A stretch of 64,000 bases of DNA from the NCBI RefSeq assembly GCF_001194135.2, contig NC_068998.1, forward strand, positions 50,154,364 to 50,218,363, in the 5' to 3' direction. Below the pieces are notes generated by a model, which saw only the letters and a program-made list of their open reading frames with translations, searched no databases and had not been told where the DNA came from. The stretch comes from Octopus bimaculoides. Lineage: Eukaryota. Position 1 is the stretch's first letter, and each line of letters begins with the position of its first letter. Positions 4,315 to 53,834 of this stretch are shown here, piece by piece. The position numbers and the translations under genes were made by a program.

Positions 4315-7074
4315 ATGATGAAAATTTCTGCCTTTTGTTTTCTTCTCTTATTTGGTATGTTGTTGTTTGTTGATTTTCTTATTACTTATTGTATGGAAGT
4401 TTTGAATAAAATTGTTTGCATACAAGTACATCTAAATGCCACTGTAGCTACATTTTTTATTATTTATTACTTACAAGTTGACATATTTCTTTGACTATTT
4501 CCTCTCGTGTGCCTTGAATTTGTGAGCGTTTCCTTCACATTGTTGCTTTACTCTCCTCTGCATGACCTGAAACTTTGCTGCATTAATTCCGATTTTATTT
4601 ACATCAAAATTGTACACTTCGCATCCCAATGCTGCAATAACCGTTGTACTCACTAAAAGCTTCTTTAGCCGCAGTTTTCCATCATTCTTCTGCAGGAATC
4701 CATTTTATCCCTCTTTAATGCACTTAAGTTTTCATTCTATCTCACGGGAAGGAGATGTCGAGAATTTGGGTCCCATTTTTTGCCTTCATGACAACTACAA
4801 TGACGGGGCCTATTGACTCTATCATTTTGTCACGTTAAATAGTGACGTCAGACTACAACGTAAATTTCTCATTCTCAAAGACTCGTGGTTTCTCCTCACA
4901 CCATGTAGCTACCCTGGCAAACCTACAATTCTCAGTTAATATCAGTTAATGAGATGTGTGATGAAGGTTTCAAGTACAATTTTTCGAATGCGGGGACCTA
5001 TGAAGAAACCTTTTTTCATTTGCGCTAGACTCAGGGAAGGGAACTCTCCTGCAAGATATGCAAATGCGGAGGATTCCTTGTCCAAGGCTTTCACAAATTG
5101 CTTACACAAACCAAGTTTAATATGCAAAGGTGGTAAAAAAATTCCATCACTTTTCACAAGTGTTTTGCGCATGATGTTGTGTTTTCCTTGCTCAATTTCA
5201 TCTCGAATCAGCTAATTCTGGCGTACAATTTCATCTCGGATCGGCTAATCCTGTTCAGCTCTCGCTCTGGAATACCATAAGCACAGGAAGCAGCAATATT
5301 TAGAATAGATCGCTGAAGGCCAGTAAGCATGGCCACAACCTTAAAATCTGCAGAAATATACCAGGTGTGGGCTTCATACTGCTGAGTGCTCTACTGGGCG
5401 CAAATTTGGGTAAAAAAATGTGTTTCTTTTTCTTTGCTGTAGTACAGCCTGTAAAGTCATGGTGACAGAAATAGCAATCATTAGAGTGATCTTTCTGCTC
5501 ACGCCAAATAATTGGCACACCAAACTTCACGTGGACATTTTTTCCTGCATACCTGGGACTCAATGTCTTTACACATGTAAGGCAACAGACATGAGGAACC
5601 CATGACTTTTCCTGCGCTTTTCTTTAGCAAAAGTCAGTTCCCCACAGATATAACAGGATCTGTTTGGATCATTTTTGCACTGCCGTGCACTCATTGTTGA
5701 AAACAGATAAGATCTGAAAGATAAAAAATAACATGAAACACAAGCTTTGAAGTATTAAGTATTTAGTGATAAATTCAATGAAATATAAGCACACAATAAT
5801 AAACCAGAAAATAGGATTTTAGGGGGAGAATCTCACAAATTCCATTTTACATGTAAATTAGGGATTTTTCAAACTCAAGCAAATGACAAATCCTGGAGGC
5901 AATGTAAGCCTTATACACAAACAAATTTATTGGATAACACTCGTAAAATAACTTTGGCCCTCGTGTTGCTATTCCAATATTAGAGTTACGTATATCTTAT
6001 GAGCTAACAAAACCAATAAGAAAATAAAGCAAGAAATGAATATAAACTGACGACGCCCTACACTCGTCAAATTCAAGAACAACAAAATCAGCTGTTAAGC
6101 CCATGGCTGGGTGGACGGCATCGGCTGATTTGTCGTAGTCTTTCTTTTTCAATATTACATTCTTGAACTTTCATAACAAAACCAATGTCAAATATTAAAC
6201 CAGAAATAATTATATACTGATGATATGATACGCTCAATGAGGAAGAAATAAAGTTCTCTGCATGACGCTTCGATATAAAATGACAACCTTTCACAAACTT
6301 CTTGGAACACCAGGATAAGCTTACACATTATGTCTTCATTTACGTCTTTTTTTAGCGACATATGACGTAGTTCAACTACTTGGATCATGTCTCTGACACT
6401 GTATGCACACTGTCTTATTATTATATATGAAAAAGCATTATATTCTAGAACATACAAGAAAATATCAGAATCCCACCTTCCGTTTGTTACGATCACACTT
6501 GTTTTTGTTTACTGAATGTAAGCGCTAATATGTAGAAAACGTGCATTGTTAATCATAGAATATGGAATAAGTCTCTTAACCGTAACTGCTATTTGTCATA
6601 TCACGTTGTAGGTGTTATTAAGACTGGTCTCTAGGCCTGGGTTGAAACTCATTTTACAATGCGGTAGAGAATGCCTTACATGCCGTGAAGTATTTAATGC
6701 AATACAAACTACATGTGTCACACAATTCAAATGAGCGAATATTTAAGAGTCGGTGTCGGGGGAGATATTATATGAACGCAGATTAAATTTAATTAAATAT
6801 GAATATAATTATTTTCATAATCTACTTCACATTGTAATTTAAATAAAGTATGTGTTGCCGTAAATCTTGTAAGCAATGATACTGCAAATATTCCTTTTAT
6901 AGGGGAAGGCACCTCCAAATTGTGTGATACACTGGGACAGTCATTTTGTCCACTGGAATATAAAGGTTTTCGGGATCCTGACCCCGGTTGTGTGTATGTA
7001 TTATCGTCTTTCTACGTTTAAATATTGAATTATTCCACGTGTATAAAATTCATCTTTACACAAAGAGTCTTATG

Positions 7075-7525: not shown

Positions 7526-10478
7526 ATTATTATTTTAGAATAATTTATCCACCTGATTTTAATGCATGTTGGGAACTTGATATCATTTACATGATTTTAT
7601 CCTTGTTCATATAAATATATATGTGTATATATTCTTTGCATCAATGCTTCCCTATATGTTTACGTATACAAAACGTATCCAAAATGTATCCTAAATTATG
7701 CTAATTTTGCTTTCTCACAAAAATTAGTTACGTTATAAAGATTATATGCTGCCAACTTCTCTTCGTCTTATTTTCAAGAAATGACATTTATAATTAGTAA
7801 ATGTTGCAAGAAGTTTCAATGCTCACCTTTCAATAAAAATATTCATTATTTCCTTTTATCGCAGGGGCCTTTTGCATTTTCTCAGATGCTTTAAGGAGAT
7901 AGACAAAAAATGTTATAAATACTTCTCATACGTGCCTTCGTGCTGGGTAAGGAATTAATTTTAAATTCTTCATTTAATGTTAATATTTTATATCAATGAA
8001 ACAGATCAGAATGCGTTTAGCTTATGTTCAGAAGCCGTCATACCCGTGTCACACTTTACTCTTTTCGTCACAAAATGACAGAAGCAGTAAATGCAGCTTT
8101 GGTGCATCGGTTATATGGCATCAAATCCTAATACCGGAAGGTACAGAGTATTTTCATTTGAAATTTTATAATTGAAATTCTCAGATTTGATTGGGTGTTC
8201 CGGAATTTACAAAAGGTCACATGATTGCTTTCATGATATTTCGAGAAGTTTCATGTACTATATGGTGATTGATAAAATAGATTTCAAAATATAAATTGTA
8301 TTGGGAGAAGAAATGTTTAGCGAAAATAACGTTTAAAATATATAAAATATTTTCCTCTCTGGTATGGCATTGAGTAACAACTTAAAAGGTACACTAACAT
8401 TGTCTCTCTAAGTATTCCTATTTGAGAAATCAAGAAAGCATCAGAAAGATTCTGTAACATTTTTAAATGCCTGTTTGTTAGATGTTTAACTGCCTGTTTG
8501 CTATACTAATTAGTAGTTGTAATTTGCATAGTCGCAGTATTTTGGTGACGGTAACAATAGTATATGAAAATTCAATCTTAATTTTAACAAGAACTAATAA
8601 CACATAATATATCATTGAAAAGGGTATAACGTGCATTGAGTGATGAAAATTATACCCACCAAATTACCATTATGTTCAGGACAATATAATAAATCCGAAT
8701 TTGCTTCAGTCATTTGCTTCTGACGTAGACTCTCTTGCAAATTTCAGTACGAGTATAACATAAATGATCCACGAAAGGTAAGTGATTTCAAAGTACATAC
8801 CACATTAACGAAATGTTTTTACTTTAATACCGTTCACATCGTTATCAGATTACTACTGTAATTACCAGATATAGCGGCGTGTATGACACGCGTCTTTTAT
8901 TTATAAATAAATTACAAAATTGTCCCACGTGTAATGAGAATGAGATAGCTGACGGAAAGGAGACCGAATATTTGTGTCTAGAGACCCGGAAAATTTCTAC
9001 AAAAATTAAGCATTTAAAACAAGTCGAAATATCATTGTCTCTTACCAGAAACTTTGGAGGAAGAACTAAAGCTGCACCGGCTGTCATATGAAGAAGTTAC
9101 ATCATCTCATTATACCTTCTTTTTCAACATATATGACCTACATTTCAAAAACTCATGTCATATTGAATTGCTTCTTAAGAAATGTCTAATAAGTGTGGCA
9201 ATGTGTAGATAACTTGTAAAATATAATTATAATATAACATACCCAATTGCAGTATTATTATAATAGCAGCAGAAACGTAGTTTAGACACCAATTCAACAA
9301 AAATGAAATACTACGGTGATACACATTGACATTGATAACAATTTATCAAAATATAATGAAATGAGGGCATTTTCTTTCATTCTGGTTTCATTGCTAATGA
9401 CATTTCACTCAGTAATCCATATTGCTATTGTGATTACATTATTAATGTTAAATAATTAAAGCGAACGTATTACACAGTCTTCAAAAACAATATTTTGAAA
9501 TATTTCCCTTTGTGGTTTGGCATTCAATACGAACTAAATGTTTATTACAAAAAAAAAAAAAGAAAAAAAATGAAAAACATACCCTCATCCTGTCTCTCTG
9601 ATTATTCTTGATTATCTTTAGTATTAGTCGTCGAAAATGAAAATGCAAGAAAGATTCCGTATTATCTTATTAGTGTGCTTATGTTAAATGGATTATACAT
9701 ATTAATAGCATGATATATTCCAGTGTCGACCACAGTAGAAGACGAAGTTTAATTCTTAATTTTAACAAGAAATGATCGCACTTAATATATCATTGAACGC
9801 TGAAAAACGTGAGTTAAATGATGGAAATTATGCCTAGTGCATTAGGATTATTTTCAAGACATTATATCAAATCCGAATCTGTTTCAGTCATTCACTTTTA
9901 ACATAGAGTCTCTCGCTAATTTCAGAACAGTGGAAACTCAAGTAAACAAGAAATGGTAAGTGATTTCAATGTACCTACTGCATAAATGAAACAGTTTGAC
10001 AGTAATAGACTTGACAATTTTTTCATTTTACTATTGAAGTTACCGGATGTGGCAGCGTGTATGACGCGCGCGGTTTTTGCCCTACCAATAGTGAGAGAGC
10101 AGATTGACAAGAGGCCAAATCTTTTTGTCTAAAGACCCGGAGAATTGCTGCAAATAATAAAGATTTTAAAAGTAGTTGAGATATCACTTCCTCTTACTGA
10201 AGAAGTTTGAAGAAATAACTCAAGGTACATCTGGAGTTATTTGGAAGTTTTACACCATCTCATTACACCTTTTTTCCAACATATATCACCTACATCTGAA
10301 AACTTTATTTGTTATTGAATTACCGGTTAAGAAATATCTTGTAAATGTGGCAATTTTTAGAACACTTTTAATGTAGAAGTAAGCTTTATTTATCTTTGCC
10401 TTTCTGTTATCTTTATAGATGTATTTTCAACTAGCATTCCATACTGCTATTGTGGTTACATTTATAATGGATTACTAA
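4315..10478 (+). CDS. Gene B: secreted 6-Cys, putatively GPI-anchored protein (100 or 110 aa) with a duplicated exon 4
   Basis: Exons 4315-4354, 6903-6993, 7865-7946, [4a 8748-8777], 4b 9926-9955, 5b 10419-10478. Translation: MMKISAFCFLLLFGEGTSKLCDTLGQSFCPLEYKGFRDPDPGCVGLLHFLRCFKEIDKKCYKYFSYVPSCW[YEYNINDPRK]NSGNSSKQEMMYFQLAFHTAIVVTFIMDY*. Canonical GT-AG, in frame. Confidence 0.85.
4780..5700 (-). mobile_element. Degenerate DNA transposase fragments, Chapaev3/CMC-like, in gene B intron 1
   Basis: ORFs contain VPIIWREQKDHSNDCYFC and FLPPLHIKLGLCKQFVKAL, motifs I recognise from Chapaev3-type transposases; the frame is broken. Confidence 0.7.
9397..9459 (+). pseudogene. Gene B exon 5a: duplicated terminal exon lacking its splice acceptor
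   Basis: MTFHSVIHIAIVITLLMLNN* is homologous to the other exon 5s but is preceded by ...ttcattgcta instead of ...YAG. Confidence 0.7.
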
Positions 10479-13453: not shown

Positions 13454-16400
13454 ATGAATCTCTCTATATTTATTTTTATCCTCTTCTTTGGTAAGTTGTT
13501 CTTTCGTGATTTTTCCGTTACAAATTAATTATCTCTATAACTTCACCATATATCTCTATGTAGCATTCGATCCACATAGTTCTATATTTATTTGATGATG
13601 TATCGAAGGCCCTATATATGTTTCTACCGAATAACGAATAACGCCTTTATTCAAGTCTTGTCACAATGCCAGCAATATCGTGGAGCGGTAGAGATCAATT
13701 ACATCGATCTTAGTTTTCAAAGGCACATAGCTTATTGACCACGAAATAATGAAACGTAAAGTCGCACTCAGCGGCATTTGAACGCAAGACGTTAAGACGG
13801 ACGGTATAGGGCTAAGCATATTCCTCGACGAGTTAACGATTCTACCAGCTCACCATCTTACGTCATTCATATATCAATGGTCTTTTCCCAGCATTTATAT
13901 ACTTAAAATTTTAGCACTGCCCATCGCATTCATTAGTTACAGGTATATAACTATATAAGTGAGATTTGGATAAATTTGACACTTTCCATAAACATAACAT
14001 AAAATAAAATTTCATCCAACAAAAAGGAAAAATATACTTGTTTGGTGTCAGCACAGATCATCCGGAAGCGAGATGGTCTATCGTTTCATCAAACGTGTTA
14101 CAGTATCTGCATTTTTGATCAGAACGGTTTATATATATAGTTGGAATTTAAAAAAAAACAAAAAACAAAAACAAAAGAAAAGACGAAGACGGGTGTGTAA
14201 ACAACAAATAGATGTATTAGTTTAACGCACGCGAAGTGAGACAGTCTTTTACGTTTCGAGCCTACGCTCTTCAACAGAAAAGAACACAGAAATATACAGG
14301 GAGGGAAAATTAAAAAAAAAAAAGGTTTAGTTGCTAGCGATCAATCATGGCGAAATATATGTAAGCAAGTTAGTGGTTACTAGGAGATTAGTTAAATTTT
14401 CTCTTCAAGAAAAGTACTAAGCAAAGGGAAAGGATCTGGGGTAGTTATGGAAGAGTCCAAGCAGTGTATTGTAGCTATAGCAACTATGCTTTCCAAATAT
14501 CAGAAAAGAAGTACTAAGAATGAAGAGAATATATTTTTAGAGACAGACCAGGGGTGATATAATGAGAATACATTCCATGAAGAAGCCAAGAAATAATATA
14601 AACTTTCCTACAGATGCAGAATTGTCTTTGTAAAATGTTCGATATTATAAAAAAAAAATGCATTATAGGATCTAATTCAAAACGTACTTTGAATAAATTA
14701 TTTGATATCGTAAATCGTTCAAGCAATAATAATAAACATAAATTTTATAGGAGTATCTTTCTCAAGACGCTGCGACGAACTGGCAAAACGACATTGCGCA
14801 GTGAAATACGAGGCATATCGACGTTATGACCCCGACTGTACGTATGTATCATCGTATTTCCACGTTTAGATTTACAAACTGTAGATTGTTCCTGTAACTA
14901 TGTATGTATATNNNNNNNNNNNNNNNNNNNNNNNNNNNNNNNNNNNNNNNNNNNNNNNNNNNNNNNNNNNNNNNNNNNNNNNNNNNNNNNNNNNNNNNNN
15001 NNNNNNNNNNNNNNNNNNNNNNNNNNNNNNNNNNNNNNNNNNNNNNNNNNNNNNNNNNNNNNNNNNNNNNNNNNNNNNNNNNNNNNNNNNNNNNNNNNNN
15101 NNNNNNNNNNNNNNNNNNNNNNNNNNNNNNNNNNNNNNNNNNNNNNNNNNNNNNNNNNNNNNNNNNNNNNNNNNNNNNNNNNNNNNNNNNNNNNNNNNNN
15201 NNNNNNNNNNNNNNNNNNNNNNNNNNNNNNNNNNNNNNNNNNNNNNNNNNNNNNNNNNNNNNNNNNNNNNNNNNNNNNNNNNNNNNNNNNNNNNNNNNNN
15301 NNNNNNNNNNNNNNNNNNNNNNNNNNNNNNNNNNNNNNNNNNNNNNNNNNNNNNNNNNNNNNNNNNNTATATATATATATATATATATATATATCCTTTG
15401 TTATATATATGTATATCCCGTGTTATAAACAAGCTGAAACCACTTTTCATGCGTAGCGTCCAATACTATATGAACTCATCACGAAGCGTGAGTTATTTTC
15501 CGTCATTTAAAGATTTTATGCATTCGAAGAACAGATATTCCTTATTAGTAACATCGTTTTAGTTCACAAATTAGGGCGTATATCAAGTACAAGACAATAT
15601 ATCGCGAAATTACTTACTCCATATTTAAATAACCGTCAAAATGATTATGATGAGAGTTTCGTTAACGCATACTTTAATGTCCAACACAGTTTATGTATTT
15701 TATAACTGTTATTAACATGAAAGGTTAATTCACTCTATTCGTTCGCCTTAAAGGCATACAATCATTAATTAAGCTTTTTGTTGAAGGCAAAAAGTCTATA
15801 ATTTGTGTGAGTGTGGTCTCCCAGTACAAAGACTCCAGTGCTCAACTGTATTTCTTTTATCGTCTCGAAAAAGAATAAACAAAGCGTCGACCTCAGCACC
15901 ATATGAACTTAGAACGTAAACACGGATAGAATCGCGATAAGCATTTTGTCTATATTTTTACTAAAACTCTTCTCCTAAAAACATTTTGGACCAATATTCG
16001 ATGTATAATATTTGAAGTGTAATAATGTTAATAGTAAATATAAGTTTGGCACATCGTCGTTATGCAACCAAGACTTAAGTAGGCTCAATAACGCAAGAAA
16101 ATCATATCATTAATGCAGGAAATTTAGAAGTTTTTTATTTTAAATAACAGTGTCATGTTTCTTCGTTTTTCCAGAGGTTATAAAAAGTTTCTGGCATGCT
16201 TTCATGGACAAGATGGGAAATGTTATGGATTCTTTAAATACCAGCCTAACTGTATGGTAAGGGATGTGTTTTTATTTTCACTCTAATGATGTACATTTAT
16301 GACAGTGAATAATATAATACATTGCATTGTATATGCATCATTCATCGATTACACTTAGAATAGAAAACCACTTCTGACAAGCGATAAAACTAATGTTAAA

Positions 16401-18171
16401 AATCTACAACTCAGTTGTACTAAATTATACAATACATAATATTCCCATTATAATTGCCATTTAGGCAATATTCGATACGAAGTCTGGCCAACCGTAATGA
16501 TGCCAGAGGAACAACTTTGTGTATTTCATATTTTGGAAGAACAAATGAGGAAGCATGTTAATAGTTTGTTTTCAGTAGGGAATGTAGTAAAATAAACATT
16601 TGTTAAAGCAATCTCAATAATGGCGGTAAACATTCACTTCACATCAAATACAAACGCCAATGTTTGAGTCCTTCATAATTTACAAAACGTTTTACGATTA
16701 TTTTGATAAGATGTTGGAATGATTTGCGTGGTATATGTCTAAAACACATCACGAATGTGAATAATAACGAAGAAGATGAATTGTGTCGCCTAAATCTTTT
16801 CGGGAGAAGTGTTTTAATGAATATATATCAAAATATTTCTCTCACCAGTTTTGCAATCGATGTAAACTAAATTTTAATTAGGATACTAAATGAATGAGTT
16901 TTGTCTGTCCAAGTGATCCTTATTAATTAATGTATCAGTGTCCAATAAATCGATAAAAATACGAGAAACAATCTGTATCATTTTGATTGTGTCTTTATAT
17001 TTGAAATGACTTTAAATACGAACATTGTGCCGCTATTCAATTTACTATATATTCTCTCTCAAATTTCAGCACAGGAATACCTCAAATAAGAAAGTAATGG
17101 TATGTGATTGTGATTTCCCCGTAAATATTACAAATATATGATAATCTTACTACAATAACCTCGGTATTCATTCCATTTAACTACAGCATGTACCAGATAC
17201 GCCGGTGTGTAAAACACATAATTTGTTTAAACATAAACTAAAAAAATTACCAGTAAGGAGTGAGTCCATAATATGAATATAGGACCGAATATTGCTCACG
17301 CAATCGCGCTTAGTCGTCCTCACCATGGGTTACTTAAATAACTTCCATGTTTGCCACCTCTGACCATCACGAAAGAGTAGGACATATACATGGTTACAAG
17401 ATCAACTCCATTTGTTTAAGCTTTTTTTTTATTGTATTTTAAGAATTAAATCTAAATTGTAAATTCCTAATATCATTTTACGTAGAAGATCCATTTCCTG
17501 AAGTTTTATCAGACATTTCTTTATGGTTATTTAACCGTCCAAAAACATTGACTGTTTGCAGAGCTCAATATGATGTAATTGCTATATACCCATTACTAAT
17601 TGCAGTGTTATTATGATACCATTTCAAATCAGTTTAAACACCAATCCAATGAGAAATTCCATATTACATTTGTATTAACATTTATAGTTATTTATGAATA
17701 TACCAAAACATGAGAGACAATTTCTTTTGTCTAGAAAATACACGAGTAATCTCACAATAGCGGAAGCTTCTCACATGAATATCGTGAAATTCTCTTCAAT
17801 TTGGAATCACTCCAGCAGCCTAACTGAGACAGCGAGAAGTGAAGTTGGCTTCGTCATGGACAGTTTTCATCTGTCATTTCTTTATGAACAAAACCTATCA
17901 CGGATGTTCTCTGTAGTCATTGTTATCTCTCTGATGACTGTACTACATTGTGTTTGAATCCAATGATGTTTTACGACAAGATCGATCGCGATATAAAGTA
18001 AAGTAACTGTAGCTAGTATTCAATGCTAAATAATATATTATAACATGTTTGCATATATATCATATCAATTTACTTTCATTAATTATATATTGTTTTCTAT
18101 TCTATTGCCAGGTGACATTTCACCAAGTATTCCTTACAGTTCTTGGCGTTACATTATTAATAAAATACTGA
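13454..18171 (+). CDS. Gene C: secreted 6-Cys, putatively GPI-anchored protein, 99 aa, basic
   Basis: Exons 13454-13490, 14751-14841, 16175-16256, 17070-17099, 18112-18171 (300 nt). Translation: MNLSIFIFILFFGVSFSRRCDELAKRHCAVKYEAYRRYDPDCTGYKKFLACFHGQDGKCYGFFKYQPNCMHRNTSNKKVMVTFHQVFLTVLGVTLLIKY*. Confidence 0.9.
13660..13860 (-). mobile_element. Degenerate tRNA-derived SINE in gene C intron 1
   Basis: Similar to the 24565-24720 copy (aaagtcgcactcagcggcatttgaacgcaagacg...gattctaccagctcacc). Confidence 0.5.
15790..15950 (-). mobile_element. Degenerate tRNA-derived SINE in gene C intron 2
   Basis: ccccagt...ctcaactg...aaagcgtcgacctcagcaccatatgaacttagaacgtaaa matches the same SINE family. Confidence 0.45.
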
Positions 18172-19011: not shown

Positions 19012-19440
19012 NNNNNNNNNNNNNNNNNNNNNNNNNNNNNNNNNNNNNNNNNNNNNNNNNNNNNNNNNNNNNNNNNNNNNNNNNNNNNNNNNNNNNNNNN
19101 NNNNNNNNNNNNNNNNNNNNNNNNNNNNNNNNNNNNNNNNNNNNNNNNNNNNNNNNNNNNNNNNNNNNNNNNNNNNNNNNNNNNNNNNNNNNNNNNNNNN
19201 NNNNNNNNNNNNNNNNNNNNNNNNNNNNNNNNNNNNNNNNNNNNNNNNNNNNNNNNNNNNNNNNTATATATATATATATATATATATATTGTATATCCTG
19301 GTGAAATCTTTCAGCTTGCACTTCACATACATAGACCATGTTCTCCGAGAAATATTCGAGGTGCGAGTGACGAAAGTGCATTTTAACATTAAAGGTACAC
19401 CCAAGCTTTTTAAACTTTTGCAACATTGTATCAACTATGA
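18876..19440 (-). mobile_element. Chapaev3-like transposase C-terminal fragment, interrupted by (TA)n and a gap
   Basis: Minus-strand reading KMHFRHSHLEYFSEN...EVQAERFHQDI and DYCRTLKRD. Confidence 0.65.
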
Positions 19441-20315
19441 CTTTGCAATTTAAACACGTATCACCAACGGCTAACCTCGGGAACTACTAAAACAAAACTA
19501 TACGATGAGTTAGCAATCATGTACACAGCTTTTGAAAGTCATCTTGTCTGTCAGAGTTGCCAACGCGTATCTGATAAACAATTTTACCTGAATTTGGCTG
19601 CTATTTTACCTTAATATTAGAAAAATATAATAGTTTATACCGAACTATTTCGTTACAAAAAATAAATCAGATAATCACTAGCTATATCAATGAAGCAAAT
19701 ATATCAAATGATTAGGAAAACCGTTGATTCTGTCGGTAAACAACAAGAGCAAACTAGTGACAGATTGCGACCCAGGCCCTGTCAGGCTAAGTACCTGGAG
19801 ATTTAGCATTTACAGGATCTGTCTATACAAGACTTAACATTATACTGTAAGTCTCATCTGACTTCGATTCCAGATCTAAAAACAGTAATAATTGCATAGC
19901 CTATGTCTGGACTTAAACCTAAAACTGGAAAATAGAAATGAGTAAAGGAATGAAATATTACATGCGTGTATTTATGTGTGGGTACGAGCGTTTAAGCATA
20001 CCAGCTGCGTTTCGAATCCGGTGGTACACACGTGTGATTATATCCTCTCCTCTAAATAACTGTCTTGAAGCAATTAACTTGCAAATGTCACTACTGAAAC
20101 TCTTCCCCTATATTAACGTTAGTTCCCTTTCTTCTACAGTGCAAGCAAATAAAATTCATATAAAATATACAATAATTCATATTATAGAATAAGCAGCTAA
20201 AAATGTCATAATTACTAGCTTGTCCGCAACATATGTTACATATTATTTGTATCAAATAAGACAACCAGGTGACTTCTATATCAGAAACCATCAATATTGA
20301 AGAGACAAAACCAAG

Positions 20316-20617
20316 ATGAAGCTCTCTGCTTTTATTTTTGTATTGTTCATTGGTAAGTAGTTTCTTCGTGATTCTTCCATTACAAATTAATATCTCTGTG
20401 CCTTTCAATATATTTCTCTGTGTGGCATTCGATCCGCGTAACAACCAAGTCTTATCTTCATTTAATGATGTATTTAAGTACCTATATATTTTTCCACCCT
20501 ACAAATAATCTACAGTCATTTCGTACCAAGGAGAATTGTCCATGCTTTATCAAAACAGTGATCATTCAGCACGCATGACACATATGTTTTTAACTGCTTT
20601 TCTCCCTCTCTCTATGC

Positions 20618-20687
<70 letters not shown>

Positions 20688-21509
20688 ACACATACACACA
20701 CACACACACACACAACACACACATACATATCCAAGCAGGGTAGTAGTTACTTGAAGATTAATTATTACTTCCATGAAAGATAGAAAAGAGCAAATGAGTA
20801 GGAATTTACAGAATAAGGTGAAAACTTCAAGGCAAGATGCGAGTAGCTTAGAAACATGCAAGCACAAGTCAGAAAGCAATAGTTAAATCTTCTCTTGAAC
20901 ATAATTACCTAGGCAAAGAGAAAAGGATTTGGGATTATTATGGAAGAGTTGAAACATCGTATGATAGCAATAGCAAGTAAGCTTTTCAAACATCAGAATT
21001 GAAGAGCTAAGTATCATGGGAACAAATTGCTCTAAACAGGTCAAGGGGATATAAGAACATATTTCATTAAAAAACCAAGTTTTAATATTTCCAAAACGCC
21101 AAGCTGTAGAATTTTGCAACAGATGTAGGTTTGACTTTCTAAAACATTCCATAGTACAAGAAAATATTGCATTATATTATCTAGTTCAAAATGCAATTTT
21201 AATAAATTATTTAATATCGTAAATCGGACAAGCAATAATGACAAAAATATTTATTTTACAGAGGTAGCTAACTCAGCATCGTGCGAAAATCTGGCAACAA
21301 AATATTGTTCATCGACATATGAGTATTATTTATCATATGACCCCAACTGTACGTACGTATCATCATATTTCTACCTCTAGATTTGCAAATACAACATCCA
21401 AACCTGTAACTATGTATATATACATACATATATATATGTGTATCAAAAATAACGGAGGAAACTGGTAAACATTTGGAGTAATCCGTCTCTATTTATACAC
21501 ACACACACA

Positions 21510-21608
<99 letters not shown>

Positions 21609-23317
21609 ACATATATTCGATACAAAGGTTAACAGGGGCAGTATTTAATACAAATTCGATACATCGTTTTTTTTCAACCTGAACAAAAGCCTGTCTCAAT
21701 AACGCAAGAAAATTATATTAATATGGTAGGAAATTTAGACTTTGATTTAAATAAAAGTGCCTCATTTCTTTCAGGGGTTACAGAGACTTTCTGGACTGCT
21801 TTCGTGGACAAGATAAAGAATGTTATGAAGACTTTAAATACATGCCTAAGTGTATGGTAAGGAATGTATTTTTAATATCGGTTTAATGACATAAGTTTAC
21901 GTCAATAAATAACAAAATAAATTATATTTCTTATACATCATTCTTCTATTACATTTTGAATAGATATTACTTCTGTCAAGCGATAATTCTAATGTTAACA
22001 ATCTATCCATTTCAATTTTAATTAGAATATGAAAAATATTAGGTCTTTCAGTCTAAGTGTTCCTTTTTATTTAATGTATCAGTTTCCAACAAATAAATAA
22101 AGACACGAGGAAACTATCTGAATGAGTTTGCTTTTATCTTTATATTATGTGAACGATAGAATTTGATTAAATGAATATATCCCAGTGACAACTACGGCAG
22201 AAACCCCAACTCTCATTCATCGTTTTATCAATAACTAATCACACATAGAATATTACTGGAAGTTCTATAACTATCGCAGTTTGTTGAAAAATAGAACTAG
22301 ATAATTCCATTCAAATAATTTAAATGCGAACTGTTTTCGACATTCATTTCACTATATATTCTGTCTCAAATATTTCAGCACAACGATGGCTCAAATAAGA
22401 AAGTGAAGGTATGTGAATTCCCAGTAAATACTACACTAATATGATAATTTTATTCCAATATCCTCCATATTATTTCCATTTTACTACAGCATTTACCAGG
22501 TACACTGGTGTGTAAAATGCATATAATTTCTTTAGATGTGAACTACAAAAGTGAACTGTAAGACGTGAGACCATAACATGAAGATAAAGACCGAATACAG
22601 CTCGCACGTTACCCGTATAAGTTTTAACGGTAAGGAACTTCAAAAAAGCTGCAATATGGCATTGTCACTAACGACCAACCCAAGCTATGTCAGCAGTTAT
22701 ATGGAGAAATTACATGATCTCTTTATACTTTCTTCTCTAACATATGGAAACTACATATGACGTCATATTATTCTTTACACAAATGAAACCATCTCTCAAA
22801 AGTGGAAGATGAAAAAGACGTTAAACTATAATTTAGAGCGTATTTGCAGTGAGTAGATAACAAGAAAGGCATTGTTTTGAAACTCTTACCTATTTGCTGC
22901 TCGATAACCTCGAATTTTACATCCGTGCATGTCAGTTATGTTAAGTAAAATATAGACAATTACGCAGTTGATAAGAAAATGATAAAACTGCGACATGGTG
23001 CCCGTATAACTTATGGTTCCATATATATTTCTAGTATATAATCACATATGAAAACAATCTACCACGGACTGCTCTCTGTTGCCATTGTTATCTTTTTCAT
23101 TGCTGTAATACATTATATGTTTGTGAAACCAATGTTTTTTCAACAAAAACTGTCGCCATAATTATGTATTCAATTCTAAACAACATATAATAAAATGTTT
23201 GCAAAATCACATCAAATTACTTTCATTAATTATATATTTGTTTTGTTCTATTTGCAGGTAACATTTCAACAAGTATTTCTTACAGCACTTGGGGTTATTT
23301 TATTAATAAAATACTGA
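20316..23317 (+). CDS. Gene D: secreted 6-Cys, putatively GPI-anchored protein, 99 aa, acidic
   Basis: Exons 20316-20352, 21262-21352, 21775-21856, 22379-22408, 23258-23317. Translation: MKLSAFIFVLFIEVANSASCENLATKYCSSTYEYYLSYDPNCTGYRDFLDCFRGQDKECYEDFKYMPKCMHNDGSNKKVKVTFQQVFLTALGVILLIKY*. Confidence 0.9.
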
Positions 23318-24009: not shown

Positions 24010-24560
24010 CTTTAATTTTATCCAGCTCTAGCAATTACCTGTTGTCTCTCTTTAGGATCCGTCGGTAATCTGCTGTCGTGATTACATTTCACCTCCGCTG
24101 GTACCTCTTTAATGTCCTGTTGAAATCTCTCACCTTGCTCATCACTTAGTTTGCCAAGATTCACTGGGAAATAGACGAGTTTTGTGTGAGGAACACTCCT
24201 GTTGCACACAATCTTTTTGAAGTGTTGCAACATGGTATCAAGTATGACTTTGTAATTCAAATACGTATTGTTTCACAATACGTCTTCTTTCACAAAAAAA
24301 ATCTCGAAAATACACTCTAAGCGCACCCATGCTTGTTTGCGAGATCCATCTATGGACTTTGCATAATCTCTGTTTTTCATTAGTTTTCGAATGTCAGGAC
24401 CAACAAATATTCTTGCCTTAATTATCTCACTGGCTATATTTGGGGATTGTTTTGGGTGACTCTACAAACAGGGTCTATCTTCAGGCAAAAATCTAACCAA
24501 CAGTTTCATCAAACCCATTTTGATGTACAAAGGGGGTCAGGATTTTAGTAGGTTAAATTA
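24010..24560 (-). mobile_element. Chapaev3-like transposase C-terminal fragment
   Basis: ORF contains LVYFPVNLGKLSDEQGERFQQDIKE; it starts at the same junction after the 3' flank as the 18876 copy. Confidence 0.65.
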
Positions 24561-24564: not shown

Positions 24565-24720
24565 TTGAATTGGCTGCTATTTTAAGTTAATATTTCGACC
24601 CCGAAAGGATGGAAGGCAACGTCGACCTCGGTGGAATTTGAACTCAGAACGAAAAGACAGACGAAATACCGCTAAACATTTTGCCCGGAGTGCTAACGTT
24701 TCTGCCAGCTCGCCGCCTCC
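24565..24720 (-). mobile_element. tRNA-derived SINE (Meta-domain-like core)
   Basis: cgaccccgaaaggatggaaggcaacgtcgacctcggtggaatttgaactcagaac...tttctgccagctcgccgcc; the reverse complement gives a tRNA-like head and a cttccatcctttcggggtcg core. Confidence 0.7.
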
Positions 24721-26006
24721 TTACTTGTAAATATATGACAAAATTGCCTGCTAGTAAAGATCCCGTGATGCACACAGAACAATGAATGTTGTCTGCTAGG
24801 GAGCCCGGAAAATAGTTGTAATAATAAAGTATTGAAAGTTAGCTGCAATATCACCTTGTGCTATCCGAAATTTAAGAGAAATTGCTCTTGCTCCCCCGGT
24901 AGTTAAGAACAGGTCACATCACATGATTATATCTCTTTCTCCAGCATATATAATCTACCCCTGGTATTTCTCTTACATTATTTAATGTTCGTATTATCTT
25001 CAAGCAGTATATTTTTGTTAACTCTCCTATTGAAAATTCTCTGCGAAAGCTGAAAAATATTTACACGATCATTTATCAGATATTCGCCATCGGAGGATAT
25101 ATATGGAGAGCTTCTGTGGGTTTCCTACTCTGGAACAACCTACATACGTATGAAACTAAATGTAGAATGAGACGTAATCCAAACACATAAATTCAAGGTG
25201 AATTTGAAAGCATTATAAGTCTAGGTCCCGCACGCCCACAAAAAGAGAAAGATATATTGAGATAAATACATGGAAGTTCCAAGGAGTTGCGCACTTGTGT
25301 CATAAGTTTGTTCTATAGCACTCACCAATTTCATTACCACTGCGTGGCGCCGAAGCTTCTATATTTGCCATGGAACTGTAAGACAATATATATTTAACAG
25401 CATATCGTTAAATGCAAAGTTCTTTTGATTTTCTTCCTGCAAAGATTATGATGTCGATGTAGGGTAGATATAATTGTATTTAAAAAAAAAAAAACAAGTG
25501 TAATCTATTTTCTGCAATTCTAGACAAAATATCACCACGGAATGAGGGAAATCTAATGGCAACACATTAAGCTGTAAGTTCATCAGCATCAATCACAATG
25601 AATAAAAGAGTACCAATAGCATAATTGATGTATGACTGCAATCCGAAGATTGAAATTATAAATTAATGAATGAAAGGACGAAAACATTTACATGTCGCAT
25701 TTCTACAAGGGAAATGAATGCGTTGAGAGTATATTCTTTGGTTTTGTTTATTGTCATATATCCTGCCAGTTACATGAGTTATTAGACAATCTTTTCCTCT
25801 ATGCTAACATTTCTCCCATTTCTTCTTCTAAAGGATGCAAAGATTTAGCTGAGAAATATCTCATAACTCATCATGTAGCATATGCAATTATAAATGTCAT
25901 ATTTATCATCCTTATGTCCGACATATGTTACATTATATTTTATGTCTGAAGAGAACAAGATGACTATTTAAACACACTTCACCGAATTTGAATACACAAG
26001 ACCAAG

Positions 26007-28384: not shown

Positions 28385-29682
28385 NNNNNNNNNNNNNNNN
28401 NNNNNNNNNNNNNNNNNNNNNNNNNNNNNNNNNNNNNNNNNNNNNNNNNNNNNNNNNNNNNNNNNNNNNNNNNNNNNNNNNNNNNNNNNNNNNNNNNNNN
28501 NNNNNNNNNNNNNNNNNNNNNNNNNNNNNNNNNNNNNNNNNNNNNNNNNNNNNNNNNNNNNNNNNNNNNNNNNNNNNNNNNNNNNNNNNNNNNNNNNNNN
28601 NNNNNNNNNNNNNNNNNNNNNNNNNNNNNNNNNNNNNNNNNNNNNNNNNNNNNNNNNNNNNNNNNNNNNNNNNNNNNNNNNNNNNNNNNNNNNNNNNNNN
28701 NNNNNNNNNNNNNNNNNNNNNNNNNNNNNNNNNNNNNNNNNNNNNNNNNNNNNNNNNNNNNNNNNNNNNNNNNNNNNNNNNNNNNNNNNNNNNNNNNNNN
28801 NNNNNNNNNNNNNNNNNNNNNNNNNNNNNNNNNNNNNNNNNNNNNNNNNNNNNNNNNNNNNNNNNNNNNNNNNNNNNNNNNNNNNNNNNNNNNNNNNNNN
28901 NNNNNNNNNNNNNNNNNNNNNNNNNNNNNNNNNNNNNNNNNNNNNNNNNNNNNNNNNNNNNNNNNNNNNNNNNNNNNNNNNNNNNNNNNNNNNNNNNNNN
29001 NNNNNNNNNNNNNNNNNNNNNNNNNNNNNNNNNNNNNNNNNNNNNNNNNNNNNNNNNNNNNNNNNNNNNNNNNNNNNNNNNNNNNNNNNNNNNNNNNNNN
29101 NNNNNNNNNNNNNNNNNNNNNNNNNNNNNNNNNNNNNNNNNNNNNNNNNNNNNNNNNNNNNNNNNNNNNNNNTATATATATATAAGGTTCTCCAATCAGC
29201 ATTCACGTATTTATTTAATTTCTCTTTCTGTGTGGTCTTATTGATGATGCTACTCTACCGAAGGTGGACCCATTTTGCTATCCTGAAGCACAATCTGCTT
29301 TCGGACGAAGAGCAAGCATTCAAATTTACGTTTATCAAGCCCTCTACGTACTCAAACTGATTGGTCTTAGTACTGAACCCTTTATCGGCGCCATATCAGA
29401 GAAAGTATCCTTCGTCTCACGCGGAAGGACAATGTGCCTCACACCAAAATCCTTTTGAGATCTGGGATCTACAACCGGATGGCGTTTCAATATTGCATGA
29501 AAAGAGATGGTCATTTAATATGACATAAATATCATTAATATAGAGATGCATACAATTGTATGTCATACAATACATCAAACTTTATAGTCCTGTTATGTTG
29601 GCCGACATCTCTGAGAATGCTTTGTCACTGAATTTAGTAAAGTATCGTTCAGAGAACATATTAACTTTTACTGAAAAGAAAC

Positions 29683-35291: not shown

Positions 35292-36127
35292 ATGATGAAA
35301 CTTATATTTATATATCTTCTTCTCATTGGTATGTAGTCACAGCAAAATAATTTTCTTGTTATATGTCTGGGCAACGATATATCGATAACACTGAGTAACG
35401 GGATTTTTGATATTGAGTTACAACTTTTATTTCCTGTATGCATTCCCTTAGAAAGTATCAAATATGGCTATTTCCTTAAAGGTTCTTTTGTTACGTTTAT
35501 TCAAAACCCTCTCCACACATGGCTCTAATGCTTCCCCACGCCACTTGCTCATGACCAGATATGCACATAGTTTCAGGCACCGAGGTAGATATGCTGTAAT
35601 GAATTATAAATGTCAATCAAATGACAATTTAAAATATGTTACTTAGCAGAATAGATCTGTGTCTCGTTTAAGCGAAAACATTGTGTTAGAAAAACACTGC
35701 CTTGATTTTGTAGTAATAAATAGGAGGTACTTATGCAAAATATACCTGGACAACTTTATAATCACTAATGTCATATAGTTTAGAGAATGATTTTTAAACG
35801 TATTTATTCAGTGTATGAAAAATGACATGCTAATTTCCAATTTGTAGGTGAAGTACTTAGCAACGATAGGTGCGTCAGATTAGCGAGAAAATTTTGCAAA
35901 CGTTACTATGTGGAGTATGAAAAAAATAGCCTCATGTGCAAGTAAGTATAACATTTCTACAATGAAAGCTATTAGAAAATGTATGTATGTATGTATGTAT
36001 ATATATATATATATGTGTGTGTGTGCGTGTGTGTGTGTGTGTTTGTGTGCATGTGTGTGTTTGTGTGTGTGTGTGAGTGTACGTTGACGCACGTATGTTA
36101 GCGAGTGTAAGTATACACACTCTTATG

Positions 36128-36159
<32 letters not shown>

Positions 36160-39017
36160 ACATCCATAGGTGTATATTTATAAAAATATATCGGCATATA
36201 ATTTATGCGCAAGTATAAGCACGTGCCTACAGATGTATATGTGTGCGTCTATGTGTCTCTGTGTGTCTGTGTGTATGTGTGTCTGTGTATGTGTGTCTGT
36301 GTATGTCCGTGTGTCTGTGTATGTGTTTACGTATTTATATAATGTCTGTAAATATACACACACGCAAATGTACGAGGGGAAATTTAGCATTATCCGCACT
36401 TTCTTCATAACATATCTTTATTATTGTCACATTGTCTACTGCGCATGTGTGCTCATAGTAAGTACTATTGTAGACACGTGATCGATTTCAGAGCGTGATC
36501 ACGCCATTTTTCTCTCTGGTTTTACAGTGTAAGCATGGACGCTCCACTAACAATGTGCCCCTAAGAAGAACAACAGCAGTTATCCGATTTGTCTGTTGCT
36601 GAAATATATTAGAGGCTTTTAGCTCAATATGGGCATAGTACAGTACCGCGTAGAGTGTGTATGAGTGGATCGAGAAATTTAAAAGTGGGCGCAAAAGTGT
36701 GACGCACGAACAGGGAGAATAACGCCCGCCGACTTCTACAACTGACGAGAAGATTCAGCAAACCCGAGAGTTTGTAATGGTGAACCTGCGAGGTATTATC
36801 GATGAGGTGGCTCGTTCACTGAAAATTCGTCATGGTTTTACTGGAAGACTAACTGAAAAAAGTGTGTACGATCAACAGTGCAAGATACATTGCTTTGCAG
36901 AGGCCAGCCATTTGCACTAAAAGCCGAACTCTATGTCGAAAGCATTTTGTTGTTGCGCGGCAATACACGAAATTTCTATATTTTGCTGAGGCCTACAACG
37001 ATTTCAGTATCAAAAGCATGTAAAAGGTAGAGACAATAGTATGTTACCAACTTGTCAAAATACACACTTTAAGGTATTTTTCATACGAATTATGAGACTG
37101 TTGTTATCTGAAGCTGTAGTGAAATTGTATTTGCTACGCCGTTTATATCATTATAATACAGCGTTTGTAAACAAACCAGAAAAGTTCCTTGTCATTTACG
37201 GAGAGTAAGCTACTATGGAAGAATCGTAGTATAATATTAAACAATTATTATTATACTATGACTCTTCCATAGTAGCTTTCTCTCTGTACCTTACAAAGCC
37301 TTTGTGAATTATTTACAAATATTATATGTAGCATTAGACAGTTTAAGTATATATTCAATGAATTTGCCTGAAATCGATGGTTGGACGTTTGGTCCAATCG
37401 GATCCGCGAGGAGCCATTTTAGTGATGGGTTCGATTCTTACTAGGTTTAGTCCACCTTTTTTCGGTCATTTATTTTGTATTTATAAATTGTCGCTTCAAA
37501 TCAGAGAATATATATATTAATATACGGTTATCTGTCTCATGAAAACGTTTGAGGATAATTTTTTTTTTTTTTGTTTTTCAGGAGTTACAAAGATTTTCTT
37601 GATTGTTTTCTTTTACATGATGATATTTGTTATGAAAACTTTAAAACCATGCACAAGTGTTCCGTAAGTTATTTATTATTAAAGTTTTGTTGGAGGTCGA
37701 GTATATGACATAGAATTAAAGAAACCAGATGTATGAAATCTCTGTCTTTTTTTTTTTTTGATGTTTTGTTGAAATCAGGCATCAACAACAGAAAGGCCAC
37801 ATTAAAAACGTCCCCAGTTTTCTATGCTAATATTGTTAACATCTTTATTTTCAAATTAGCACGAAAGACCGATAGATTATTTAGTCAAAAAGGCAGGTGT
37901 CTCTGCTAGGCATTCTACAAGCATTATTAATCCAACTAATGAAGCTCTTTCGAAAATAGTTAATTAACTAATAATAATGAAAACGATTAGCCCCCGCTCT
38001 CAAAATTTCAATCACCGTGCCTTAAGATTAGTGCATTGTTATTATCCTTATGATTAATATTGCATCTGCTAATTATGTTTTACATTATATTGCGTCATTA
38101 ATTAATATATGACATAACATAACGGCTGTTTCATGAGGCGTTGTGTTTACATACTTTACATACATTATCACTAATCACAAAGTGTATATTACTAGCAATG
38201 TTATAATTGTGTATGCTGAAATCCAGGTTAAATTCATAGACTTGTACTTGTGACGATATACCGAATACAAATTTGTTTCAGATTTATACTTTAACGAGAT
38301 ATTACGTTTTTATTTTAGCATCCGGCAGAACATGAATCTAGTAGCAAAGATAAGGTACGTGATTTCATCGCAATTGCTAGATCAGCACTTTAACTGCAGT
38401 ATCAATGATAACGTTTGTATTTACACCTGCATAAATAGTGTAACATAACTGCTTAGTATATTATACACAGAATATCATTGCATTACTGATTATTATTCTT
38501 TGAAATATTTGATAAACCATCTAATAACTTCCCTAGCGTATTATGACAACATAAACATATCCATTAGTGCTTGTAGTAATATTATTAACCACTGCGAAGC
38601 TATTACAATAGCAGTCCTAGGGGAAACTCGGAATCAATGTGATGCATGCACCTTATGGTAATTGTCACAAACATATATGCAGCAACACATGTAGAATTTT
38701 CATAACATTATTAGAACACGACAGGTAAACATTTGTTAATCAAATGTGCACATATGGTCAATTTTATTTCATCATTTATTACGTAGGGGCAAAAGTTTTG
38801 TTCCACTAGCTACAGCGTGGAATTTGTCACTCTTTAACACATTTAGTTTTAAAATACGATTTCAGAACAAATGTCTTACTCTGGAAATACATTTCATAAA
38901 TATACTTTCCTTGAACATGTATTAAAGTCTTCTACAGTTTTTCTGTTCTCGTTACAGGCGAAATATGGATCAGTAATCATTACTGCATTTGTAGGTATAT
39001 TTTTCATGCATAACTGA
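35292..39017 (+). CDS. Gene F: secreted 6-Cys, putatively GPI-anchored protein, 102 aa
   Basis: Exons 35292-35328, 35848-35941, 37582-37663, 38319-38354, 38958-39017. Translation: MMKLIFIYLLLIGEVLSNDRCVRLARKFCKRYYVEYEKNSLMCKSYKDFLDCFLLHDDICYENFKTMHKCSHPAEHESSSKDKAKYGSVIITAFVGIFFMHN*. Confidence 0.9.
36590..36870 (+). mobile_element. Mariner transposase N-terminal (HTH) fragment in gene F intron 2
   Basis: Reads YEWIEKFKSGRKSVTHEQGE*RPPTSTTDEKIQQTREFVMVNLRGIIDEVARSLKIRHG, with an in-frame stop. Confidence 0.75.
37202..37283. repeat. 34-bp imperfect inverted repeat (hairpin)
   Basis: Arms at 37202-37235 and 37250-37283 with a 14-nt loop; 31 Watson-Crick pairs, 1 G-U pair and 2 mismatches. Confidence 0.85.
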
Positions 39018-39529: not shown

Positions 39530-39720
39530 AGGCGTGAAATTTGGGGGCGGGGGATAATCGATTATATCAACCCCAGTGTTCAACTGGTACTTAATTTTTC
39601 GACCCCGAAAGGACGAAAGGCAAAGTCGACCTCAGTGGAATTTTATCTCAGAACGTAGCGACGCGCGAAACCCGGTAAGGACTTCTACTAGCTTGCTAGC
39701 GATTCTGCCAGCTCACCGTC
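39530..39720 (-). mobile_element. tRNA-derived SINE (Meta-domain-like core)
   Basis: ccccagtgttcaactggtacttaatttttcgaccccgaaaggacgaaaggcaaagtcgacctcagtggaa...gattctgccagctcacc. Confidence 0.7.
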
Positions 39721-40187
39721 TATTTATTAAATATGATGATAATAATTATTATTGATGTTTGAAGCAGCCTCTTTCATTCTTGATATGTAATTCTACAACA
39801 TGTAACGGTGATTGGATGATTAATAGATTGACCCCGAAATATTATTTTGGTTCGTTCATAGTGTTTTAACACTTACATACTTTTCGATCATCGCTACAAG
39901 GTAAACATCGTTGTTTTATCAAGTGTTGGTAGATCATTGTAAATATGCAATCACAAAATTCAATTTAACCCGTACATCTGACTCTGGGCTTTCTTTGCTG
40001 GTTATAAAGTTGTGCACAAATGGTGTATAACATTTATGACCGTTAATTCAGTAACATTTCATTGATTAATCCATAAAAGGCTAGATCTTTGGAAAATATT
40101 ATAAGCGGACATTTTATTTCGGACGATTGCTGACTGAGATCAAATGTAGTGTGAGTCATAAACAAACTCTATTAACTCTGGTGGAGT

Positions 40188-44859: not shown

Positions 44860-45170
44860 ATGAGAATCCTTATTCTACTTTCATTTGTTCTTCTCTTTGG
44901 TATGTAGAAACAGGAAAACTATTTCCTTTTTTATGTCTGATATATCGGTAATTTTCGTATATGATATTATAATATTACATATTATATATTGATAATATTC
45001 GTATGTCTCTTCATCAACATGTCTTGCAAGCTCTCAATGACATGATCATTTTATTGTAAATTTATATCTAAGCCTCTATATTTTTTATCTATCAGTTTAT
45101 CTCACACATTTATTTAGACACCTACAGTTTGAATATATACTTCTCATTTTATATATTTCACACACAGTTA

Positions 45171-52304: not shown

Positions 52305-52355
<51 letters not shown>

Positions 52356-52938
52356 NNNNNNNNNNNNNNNNNNNNNNNNNNNNNNNNNNNNNNNNNNNNN
52401 NNNNNNNNNNNNNNNNNNNNNNNNNNNNNNNNNNNNNNNNNNNNNNNNNNNNNNNNNNNNNNNNNNNNNNNNNNNNNNNNNNNNNNNNNNNNNNNNNNNN
52501 NNNNNNNNNNNNNNNNNNNNNNNNNNNNNNNNNNNNNNNNNNNNNNNNNNNNNNNNNNNNNNNNNNNNNNNNNNNNNNNNNNNNNNNNNNNNNNNNNNNN
52601 NNNNNNNNNNNNNNNNNNNNNNNNNNNNNNNNNNNNNNNNNNNNNNNNNNNNNNNNNNNNNNNNNNNNNNNNNNNNNNNNNNNNNNNNNNNNNNNNNNNN
52701 NNNNNNNNNNNNNNNNNNNNNNNNNNNNNNNNNNNNNNNNNNNNNNNNNNNNNNNNNNNNNNNNNNNNNNNNNNNNNNNNNNNNNNNNNNNNNNNNNNNN
52801 NNNNNNNNNNNNNNNNNNNNNNNNNNNNNNNNNNNNNNNNNNNNNNNNNNNNNNNNNNNNNNNNNNNNNNNNNTATATATATAATATATATCAAGATTTA
52901 GTTTTTCATAATAGTATATAGAAATATGTGTGTGTGGC

Positions 52939-52970
<32 letters not shown>

Positions 52971-53790: not shown

Positions 53791-53834
<44 letters not shown>

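Follow-up and report, generated by a model that had tools for sequence, protein, structure and literature searches.

A tandem array of small six-cysteine proteins restricted to Octopus, with a borderline resemblance to neuritin and the RGM N-terminal domain

The 64,000-nucleotide stretch of Octopus bimaculoides DNA analysed here (contig NC_068998.1, positions 50,154,364 to 50,218,363 of the forward strand; hereafter the window) raises the question of what is encoded at its positions 21330–21856, where a cysteine core of the form C3-x8-C4-x7-C5 had been noticed and likened to neuritin (CPG15) and to the helical N-terminal domain of the RGM proteins. The window is animal genomic DNA of about 32% G+C, rich in (TA)n and (CA)n microsatellites, and the proteins it encodes are RefSeq entries of O. 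bimaculoides from one 55.56-Mb chromosome record. The answer that we consider probable is an orphan family restricted to Octopus, composed of small three-disulfide helical proteins of the secretory pathway that are most likely held at the cell surface by a glycosylphosphatidylinositol (GPI) anchor and that diversify by tandem duplication.

The interval 21330–21856 does not form one continuous open reading frame (ORF). It spans the last 23 nucleotides (nt) of exon 2, a 422-nt intron and exon 3 of a plus-strand gene, gene D, and the microsatellite-filled intron 2 makes up its bulk. All splice sites of the gene are AG/GT, and its five exons join to a coding sequence of 300 nt with a single stop codon:

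20316–23317 (+): gene D, five exons
20316–20352 (+): gene D exon 1, start codon and n/h region of the predicted signal peptide (MKLSAFIFVLFI plus 1 nt), followed by a phase-1 intron
21262–21352 (+): gene D exon 2, cleavage region of the signal peptide, helix 1 (C1, C2), loop and C3, followed by a phase-2 intron
21353–21774 (+): gene D intron 2, (CA)n and (TA)n microsatellites between gt...ag borders
21775–21856 (+): gene D exon 3, (T)GYRDFLDCFRGQDKECYEDFKYMPKCM, helices 2 and 3 (carrying C4 and C5, respectively) and C6; core of the motif
22379–22408 (+): gene D exon 4, mini-exon of 30 nt, translated HNDGSNKKVK; possible GPI omega site at D-G-S or N-D-G, plus a basic spacer
23258–23317 (+): gene D exon 5, VTFQQVFLTALGVILLIKY and stop, hydrophobic C-terminal tail of the predicted GPI-attachment signal

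Exon 1 was located by scanning for an ATG followed by a hydrophobic run and a GT, and the spliced model translates cleanly; homologous first exons are present in the neighbouring genes B, C, E, F and H. Exon 2 was placed by its AG/GT borders and by tblastn and tblastx matches to paralogs. It ends in GAC CCC AAC TGT AC, followed by gtacgt, with the C3 codon at 21348–21350. Exon 3 is preceded by tttcag, starts with G GGT TAC AGA GAC TTT CTG GAC TGC and ends in TGT ATG, followed by gtaagg. Mini-exons equivalent to exon 4 are found in genes A, B, C, E, F and G. The spliced product reads ...YDPNC-TGYRDFLD-C-FRGQDKE-C-YEDFKYMPK-CM, which is C3-x8-C4-x7-C5-x9-C6, and the core as first noticed is exact once the end of exon 2 is joined to exon 3.

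Gene D is one of eight tandem paralogs, lettered A to H along the window and all on the plus strand, which were identified by motif scans, by tblastn and tblastx of the window against itself and by splice-site scans. The gene models were built by hand; the RefSeq counterparts of C, E and F are each named "uncharacterized protein". The genes share one exon plan. Exon 1 contains the ATG, 12–13 hydrophobic codons and one further nucleotide, followed by a phase-1 intron inside the signal peptide. Exon 2 encodes the signal-peptide cleavage region, C1-x7-C2, a loop and C3, and ends one residue past C3 at a phase-2 intron, while exon 3 carries C4, C5 and C6 and ends at a phase-0 intron. This is followed by a mini-exon of 30–36 nt (10–12 codons), rich in Ser/Asn/Gly and Lys, and by exon 5, which consists of 19 hydrophobic codons and the stop. 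The spliced coding sequences of B to F are in frame, with AG/GT borders and intact ORFs. Gene C is the closest paralog of D (62% amino acid identity). The pattern C-x2-[YF]-x2-F-x2-C is present in C (CTGYKKFLAC), D, E (CKSYKDFLDC), F (CKDYVEFLRC) and A (C-EGFFKFMK-C), the exceptions being gene B, with Leu at +3, and gene G, with Ile at +6; its recurrence across the window is due to paralogy and not to chance. Both the recurrence, which in the present lettering concerns genes A, C, D, E and F, and a large local expansion of a small six-cysteine protein had been proposed in the sequence-only reading, and both hold, the expansion amounting to the eight paralogs with their signal peptide and GPI-type C-terminal signal.

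The family protein has about 100 residues: a signal peptide, a six-cysteine domain of about 50 residues, the Ser/Asn/Gly stretch from the mini-exon and a hydrophobic tail. A profile built from the window paralogs retrieved 34 of 1.84 billion representative proteins at E < 1e-3, and no intermediates outside Octopus were found. The source is named for 32 of the 34, and 31 of these come from O. bimaculoides, O. vulgaris or O. sinensis and are labelled "uncharacterized" or "hypothetical"; the two outside this count are P0022, which has no source name, and P0003, which is window gene E. One clear family member, P0033, is labelled "hypothetical protein, partial [Campylobacter fetus]" and comes from a contig of 322 base pairs; it is likely octopus DNA contaminating a bacterial assembly. 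Nearly all O. bimaculoides members lie on the same chromosome, with LOC numbers in runs (128249755–758, 820–839, 868 and 931–947), and the member P0026 is placed on CM046618.1 of GCA_001194135.2. A word-indexed protein search with exons 2 and 3 of gene D gave no match and one with a 29-sequence alignment gave four proteins; the exhaustive profile search recovered the family.

In the alignment of 29 full-length members, the six cysteines are the sole invariant columns. Their spacing is C-x7-C-x12-16-C-x8-C-x7/8-C-x9/11-C, with C-x7-C-x13-C...C-x9-C in gene D. No family member has a precomputed or at-threshold Pfam domain. The genes are annotated but uncharacterised, with no Pfam family, solved structure or named function, and in the literature no description of this octopus family was found, nor anything relevant on neuritin together with RGM. 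Several RefSeq isoforms are listed per gene, which, from the way RefSeq builds its models, is a hint of transcript support. Entries P0012, P0031/P0036 and P0028, from O. vulgaris or O. sinensis, contain two or three tandem six-cysteine domains per protein, and may be genuine multi-domain members or else the outcome of gene models that were fused.

The fold of the domain was predicted with AlphaFold2 from paralog C, which is 53% identical to D in the domain and has identical cysteine spacing. With a 31-sequence alignment, the gene C domain is modelled as all-helical, with a predicted local distance difference test score (pLDDT) of 88.1 and a predicted template modelling score (pTM) of 0.72. Helices are formed by residues 2–12, 14–21, 28–37, 42–49 and 52–55; C3 and C4 bracket the central helix, the helix after it contains C5, and C6 belongs to the short final helix. 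The part encoded by exon 3 is helical, with pLDDT values of 88–94. Prediction of full-length D with the eight window paralogs likewise gives a helical core, at residues 21–65 (pLDDT 82–90). The confidence of the model indicates a real foldable domain. In the stretch C-x2-aromatic-x2-Phe-x2-C-x7-C, two large hydrophobic residues are spaced by three positions along the central helix; we infer that they face the core and that the cysteines fasten this helix to the adjacent ones. The all-helical model leaves no room for a beta fold, three-finger or other: the beta-rich or three-finger outcome, named beforehand as the one that would count against a neuritin-like fold, is not what was obtained, and a three-finger (Ly6) identity is ruled out by the model.

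Structure searches of the Protein Data Bank (PDB) were negative. For the gene C domain model, the best Foldseek match has E = 6.1 and no RGM chain is retrieved, though the library contains chains of the RGM N-terminal domain (RGM-ND). The full-length D model, in which the helices of signal peptide and tail run on into the core, retrieves noise (best E = 4), and a profile search of PDB sequences gave chance matches only (cofilin and a CHCH protein).

Downstream of C6, a linker of 10–25 residues leads to the hydrophobic tail. Signal peptides and GPI signals were called by rule-based sequence checks, for a hydrophobic N-terminus and for a triplet, spacer and tail, respectively. In 24 of the 29 members, a small-residue triplet (DGS, NTS, NSS, GSS or SSS) is located 4–16 residues, mostly 6–13, upstream of an uncharged hydrophobic segment; this segment is typically 13–20 residues long and in most members ends 0–4 residues from the C-terminus. 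By established rules, such a layout is that of a GPI-attachment signal. The tail is absent in a few members (P0019, P0033).

The rate of change is distributed unevenly along the protein. Between C and D, the mature domain has a ratio of nonsynonymous to synonymous substitution rates (dN/dS) of 0.84, compared with 0.57 in the signal peptide and 0.36 in the C-terminal part with the tail, while exon 2 is 65% identical against 76–79% for the flanking intron DNA. Judged by these ratios, the tail exon is under purifying selection. The scaffold, which consists of the cysteines and a few hydrophobic positions, is fixed, and surface residues diverge fast between copies; this combination fits a diversified set of cell-surface recognition proteins or of ligands or co-receptors.

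Put together as a mechanism, the family protein would enter the endoplasmic reticulum and lose its signal peptide, and the domain would fold up as a small bundle of helices that three disulfides hold in place. Its central helix would be the segment C3-x8-C4, with the +3 aromatic and the +6 Phe side chains packing into the core. A GPI anchor, attached at a small residue supplied by the mini-exon, would then replace the C-terminal tail, leaving a helical knob of about 55–60 residues on the outer face of the cell membrane.

Several points weigh against this proposal. GPI anchoring and surface display are deduced from sequence rules, and the hydrophobic tail might equally well serve to anchor the protein in the membrane or form a propeptide. 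A dN/dS near 1 would be equally expected under relaxed constraint. The gene D protein falls into the 50% cluster of gene C, and a RefSeq model of its own was not retrieved for D. Finally, in view of the repeated weak RGM_N and NRN1 matches described below, which exceed those of cysteine-fixed shuffles, the term orphan family may understate a real remote relationship.

This last point leads to the alternative that fares best, namely that the octopus domain is a true, highly diverged homolog of the three-disulfide helical N-terminal domain of neuritin and RGM, from which C-x8-C-x7-C was inherited; one conceivable path is that an RGM-like gene retained signal peptide, N-domain and GPI signal and afterwards expanded among octopods. 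The facts given in the sequence-only reading are correct: human neuritin does contain CTYWEDFHSC-x7-C (the neuritin sequence used is 97–100% identical to annotated neuritins), C66-x8-C75-x7-C83 is invariant in neuritins of 24 vertebrates, and the RGMA, RGMB and RGMC chains in the PDB have C-x8-C-x7-C. The overall architecture (signal peptide, six cysteines, helical domain, GPI signal) is also the same. The RGMB N-terminal domain (RGMB-ND) is a three-helix bundle with three disulfides (PMC7354924), and the prediction of a helical octopus domain with six cysteines agrees with this description, although Foldseek retrieves no RGM chain for it (best E = 6.1).

When window genes B to G were scanned against Pfam, neither NRN1 nor RGM_N was matched even at E <= 10. 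Among the 29 members, RGM_N (PF06535) is the Pfam family with the largest number of matching members, all below threshold: three, none of them a window gene, score 15.6, 13.2 and 10.2 bits (E = 0.02, 0.11 and 0.97; cut-off 24.2). NRN1 (PF15056) is matched by one member, at 14.8 bits (E = 0.033; cut-off 27 bits). Every one of these matches falls on the C3–C5(C6) block. Scores of 10–16 bits stand against curated thresholds of 24–27, and unrelated Pfam families appear at similar E-values, such as Big defensin at 0.011 and SH3_retrovirus at 0.008. As candidates in their own right, Big defensin, SH3_retrovirus, Thioredoxin_9 and PAR1 were set aside as single, sub-threshold matches, and matches to CHCH/Cx9C proteins (E = 0.19–0.82) were rejected because the family proteins carry secretory signal peptides.

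As a control, 116 copies in which the cysteines were kept in place and the other domain residues were shuffled were scanned against Pfam. RGM_N was matched by one of the 116, and NRN1 is absent from the 25 families listed. With RGM_N or NRN1 matched by 4 of 29 real and 1 of 116 shuffled sequences (Fisher p = 0.006), the resemblance therefore slightly exceeds what cysteine spacing alone provides.

Profile-profile comparison, which had been proposed as a check, returned no significant similarity to either family. With hhalign, the 31-sequence octopus domain aligned to the 24 vertebrate neuritins with a probability of 3.7% (P = 0.012) over 23 columns, covering C3 to C5 only, and to RGMA, RGMB and RGMC with a probability of 0.6% (P = 0.09), likewise across no more than 23 columns. 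When the columns of the neuritin alignment were shuffled, the observed score was reached in 1 of 120 cases with all columns shuffled, which favours kinship, and in 7 of 120 with the cysteine columns fixed, which does not. In the control comparison, hhalign found no similarity between neuritin and RGM-N (P = 0.77), so the premise of a shared superfamily is itself unsupported by the same method. In local searches with hidden Markov models (HMMs), vertebrate neuritins reach at most 16.1 bits with the octopus-domain HMM, and P0020 reaches 15.3 bits with the RGM-ND HMM, both on the C3–C5 block; these local scores (<= 16 bits) are equivalent to E of about 0.01–0.03 at library scale.

Further points speak against homology: the lack of an RGM chain among the Foldseek matches of a confident model, the different flanking cysteine spacings and domain sizes (about 50 residues against about 85 in neuritin), the missing intermediates outside Octopus, with all listed neuritins being from vertebrates where the source is named, and the origin of the hypothesis in the motif itself, by which the targeted tests are not independent. 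On balance, the signal is borderline and not to be called absent, homology is unproven, and we hold true descent from such a domain to be unlikely. Of the original interpretation, the expansion, the signal peptide and GPI-type tail, the helical fold and matches on the C3–C5 block above those of shuffled sequences have stood, while significant profile or structure similarity was not obtained and the suggested neural or synaptic role is hypothetical. The match, limited as it is to the cysteine block of the central helix, is best read as either convergence on a small disulfide-helix solution or an undemonstrably remote relationship; such a motif could arise repeatedly in disulfide-stapled helical bundles like RGMB-ND. 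A more far-reaching version, in which an ancient RGM-N/neuritin-type module radiated in octopuses to give dozens of rapidly diversifying GPI-anchored copies serving as a neuronal or sensory surface code or as co-receptors of the BMP/GDF type, appears to us highly doubtful.

A different alternative leaves the family Octopus-specific and removes the anchor: the proteins would be secreted effectors (antimicrobial, venom-like or pheromone) with a propeptide tail, or else single-pass, tail-anchored membrane peptides. Conserved signal-peptide and tail exons around a hypervariable cysteine-scaffold exon, combined with tandem expansion, are typical of toxin and antimicrobial peptide families, and the few members without a tail also count in favour of this alternative. 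The weak Pfam matches to Big defensin and to Myticin-prepro (E = 0.76) point the same way, but they are sub-threshold and begin at or near the N-terminal signal peptide. The full canonical layout of the GPI signal in 24 of the 29 members and the stronger constraint on the tail than on the mature domain also argue against this alternative, and the tails, typically of 13–20 residues and containing Thr, Ser, His and Gln, are short for a stable transmembrane helix. We regard both forms of this alternative as quite improbable. That the array is mostly decaying, non-functional duplicated DNA and its gene models annotation artefacts, for which gene G, lacking an ATG and part of exon 2, and the mature-domain dN/dS near 1 could be adduced, is hardly credible given six cysteines invariant across 29 diverged members, intact ORFs and AG/GT sites in B to F, purifying selection on the tail, a confident AlphaFold2 model and several RefSeq isoforms per gene, taken as a hint of transcript support.

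The remaining genes of the array are arranged as follows:

1927–3123 (+): gene A (LOC128249947), exons 3–5 only (1927–2008, 2605–2634, 3064–3123), with exons 1–2 upstream of the window; matches RefSeq P0005/P0162
4315–10478 (+): gene B, exons 4315–4354, 6903–6993, 7865–7946, 9926–9955 (or the duplicate 8748–8777) and 10419–10478
13454–18171 (+): gene C (LOC128249945), exons 13454–13490, 14751–14841, 16175–16256, 17070–17099 (alternative donor 17120) and 18112–18171
35292–39017 (+): gene E, exons 35292–35328, 35848–35941, 37582–37663, 38319–38354 and 38958–39017; product identical to P0003
44860–49539 (+): gene F (LOC128249940), exons 44860–44899, 45805–45898, 47491–47572, 48842–48877 and 49480–49539
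52012–57026 (+): gene G, exon-like pieces 52012–52042, 53403–53472, 55321–55402, 56276–56305 and 56967–57026
62508–63777 (+): gene H (LOC128249829), exons 1–2 only (62508–62547, 63678–63777), with the remainder past the window end

The model products of C and F are identical to XP_052830547.1 (P0001) and XP_052830537.1 (P0002), respectively, and gene H matches the N-terminus of P0004 (XP_052830331.1). Gene B has two versions of the exon 4 mini-exon, at 8748–8777 and 9926–9955 (YEYNINDPRK and NSGNSSKQEM), both with AG/GT borders and similar upstream sequence; possibly the exon with the omega site has been duplicated and its two copies are spliced in a mutually exclusive way. Exon 4 of gene C has alternative donors at 17099 and 17120. 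The distal one is used in RefSeq isoform X1 (P0035, 106 residues), which thereby contains the insert VCDCDFP, with two additional cysteines before the tail. Gene G is probably a pseudogene, because CAA stands where its paralogs have ATG and a deletion of eight codons shortens the C2–C3 loop from x13 to x5. Its exon 4 acceptor is weak, and identity between F and G is lower in the exons (67%) than in the non-coding DNA around them (78%).

Outside the array, eight non-family ORFs of the window were scanned against Pfam and gave no match. The broken ORFs at 4945–5623 and 24021–24536, both on the minus strand, and at 19283–19462 are similar to each other (PPLHIKLGL... / ...GERFQQDI...), have no Pfam match and look like transposon remnants. 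A short interspersed repeat is common to 24585–24726, 39589–39729 and 13725–13892, in intergenic or intronic positions (59–75% at the translated level). The window contains 13 runs of N, which are assembly gaps (e.g. 14912–15367 and 28385–29172). Several of those inspected are edged by (TA)n or (CA)n microsatellites, and some lie inside introns of family genes (intron 2 of gene C, introns 1 and 2 of gene G).

Lineage-specific expansions of gene families for cell-surface and sensory proteins are a known feature of octopus genomes. The present expansion, previously undescribed, comprises dozens of tandem genes encoding a domain that is confidently predicted and to which no PDB entry shows detectable similarity. 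Should GPI anchoring and expression in neurons or suckers both hold, the proteins would be candidate recognition or signalling molecules specific to octopods. A real link to RGM-N or neuritin would provide neuritin with an invertebrate relative and hint at the origin of such mini-ligands; had the module indeed radiated in octopuses, this would be a second cephalopod expansion of surface proteins, beside the protocadherins, and its members the first invertebrate relatives of neuritin. As it stands, the locus represents a well-delimited orphan family and a cautionary case of motif-level resemblance.

Among known systems, neuritin (NRN1/CPG15) is close in plan: it is small, with a signal peptide, six cysteines and a C-terminal GPI-type signal, and in its C-x8-C-x7-C block, position +3 is aromatic and +6 is Phe, as in the octopus protein (CTYWEDFHSC in neuritin, CTGYRDFLDC in gene D). 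However, its mature domain has about 85 residues against about 50 in the octopus domain, and in its pattern C-x9-C-x33-C-x8-C-x7-C-x27-C only the middle x8/x7 spacing is common to the octopus family. Neuritin retains 61% identity between shark and mammal, whereas the octopus genes evolve fast, and the listed neuritin matches are all from vertebrates where the source is named, in contrast to a family found in Octopus only. There is no neuritin chain in the PDB. The RGM N-terminal domain also contains the C-x8-C-x7-C block and directly follows the signal peptide of a GPI-anchored protein, but its outer spacing is C-x4-C-x22-C...C-x21-C; that the flanking spacings differ, as had been remarked at the outset, is thus borne out by the neuritin, RGM and octopus patterns alike. 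RGMs continue into a large C-terminal domain, to about 370–450 residues. Chain 6z3m_C, for example, has 371 residues. The octopus proteins, of about 100 residues, lack such a domain and stop some 10 residues past the six-cysteine one. The Ly6/uPAR proteins offer a functional analogy only, as small, cysteine-rich, GPI-anchored surface modulators that are tandemly expanded and fast-evolving. They have a beta-rich three-finger fold with 8–10 cysteines, as opposed to the octopus domain, predicted to be all-helical with six, and Pfam UPAR_LY6 is matched neither by the window genes nor by the 29 members. By its sequence features, the octopus family would belong to the same general kind of small, cysteine-rich, GPI-anchored surface proteins, represented here by an undescribed set found in Octopus only.

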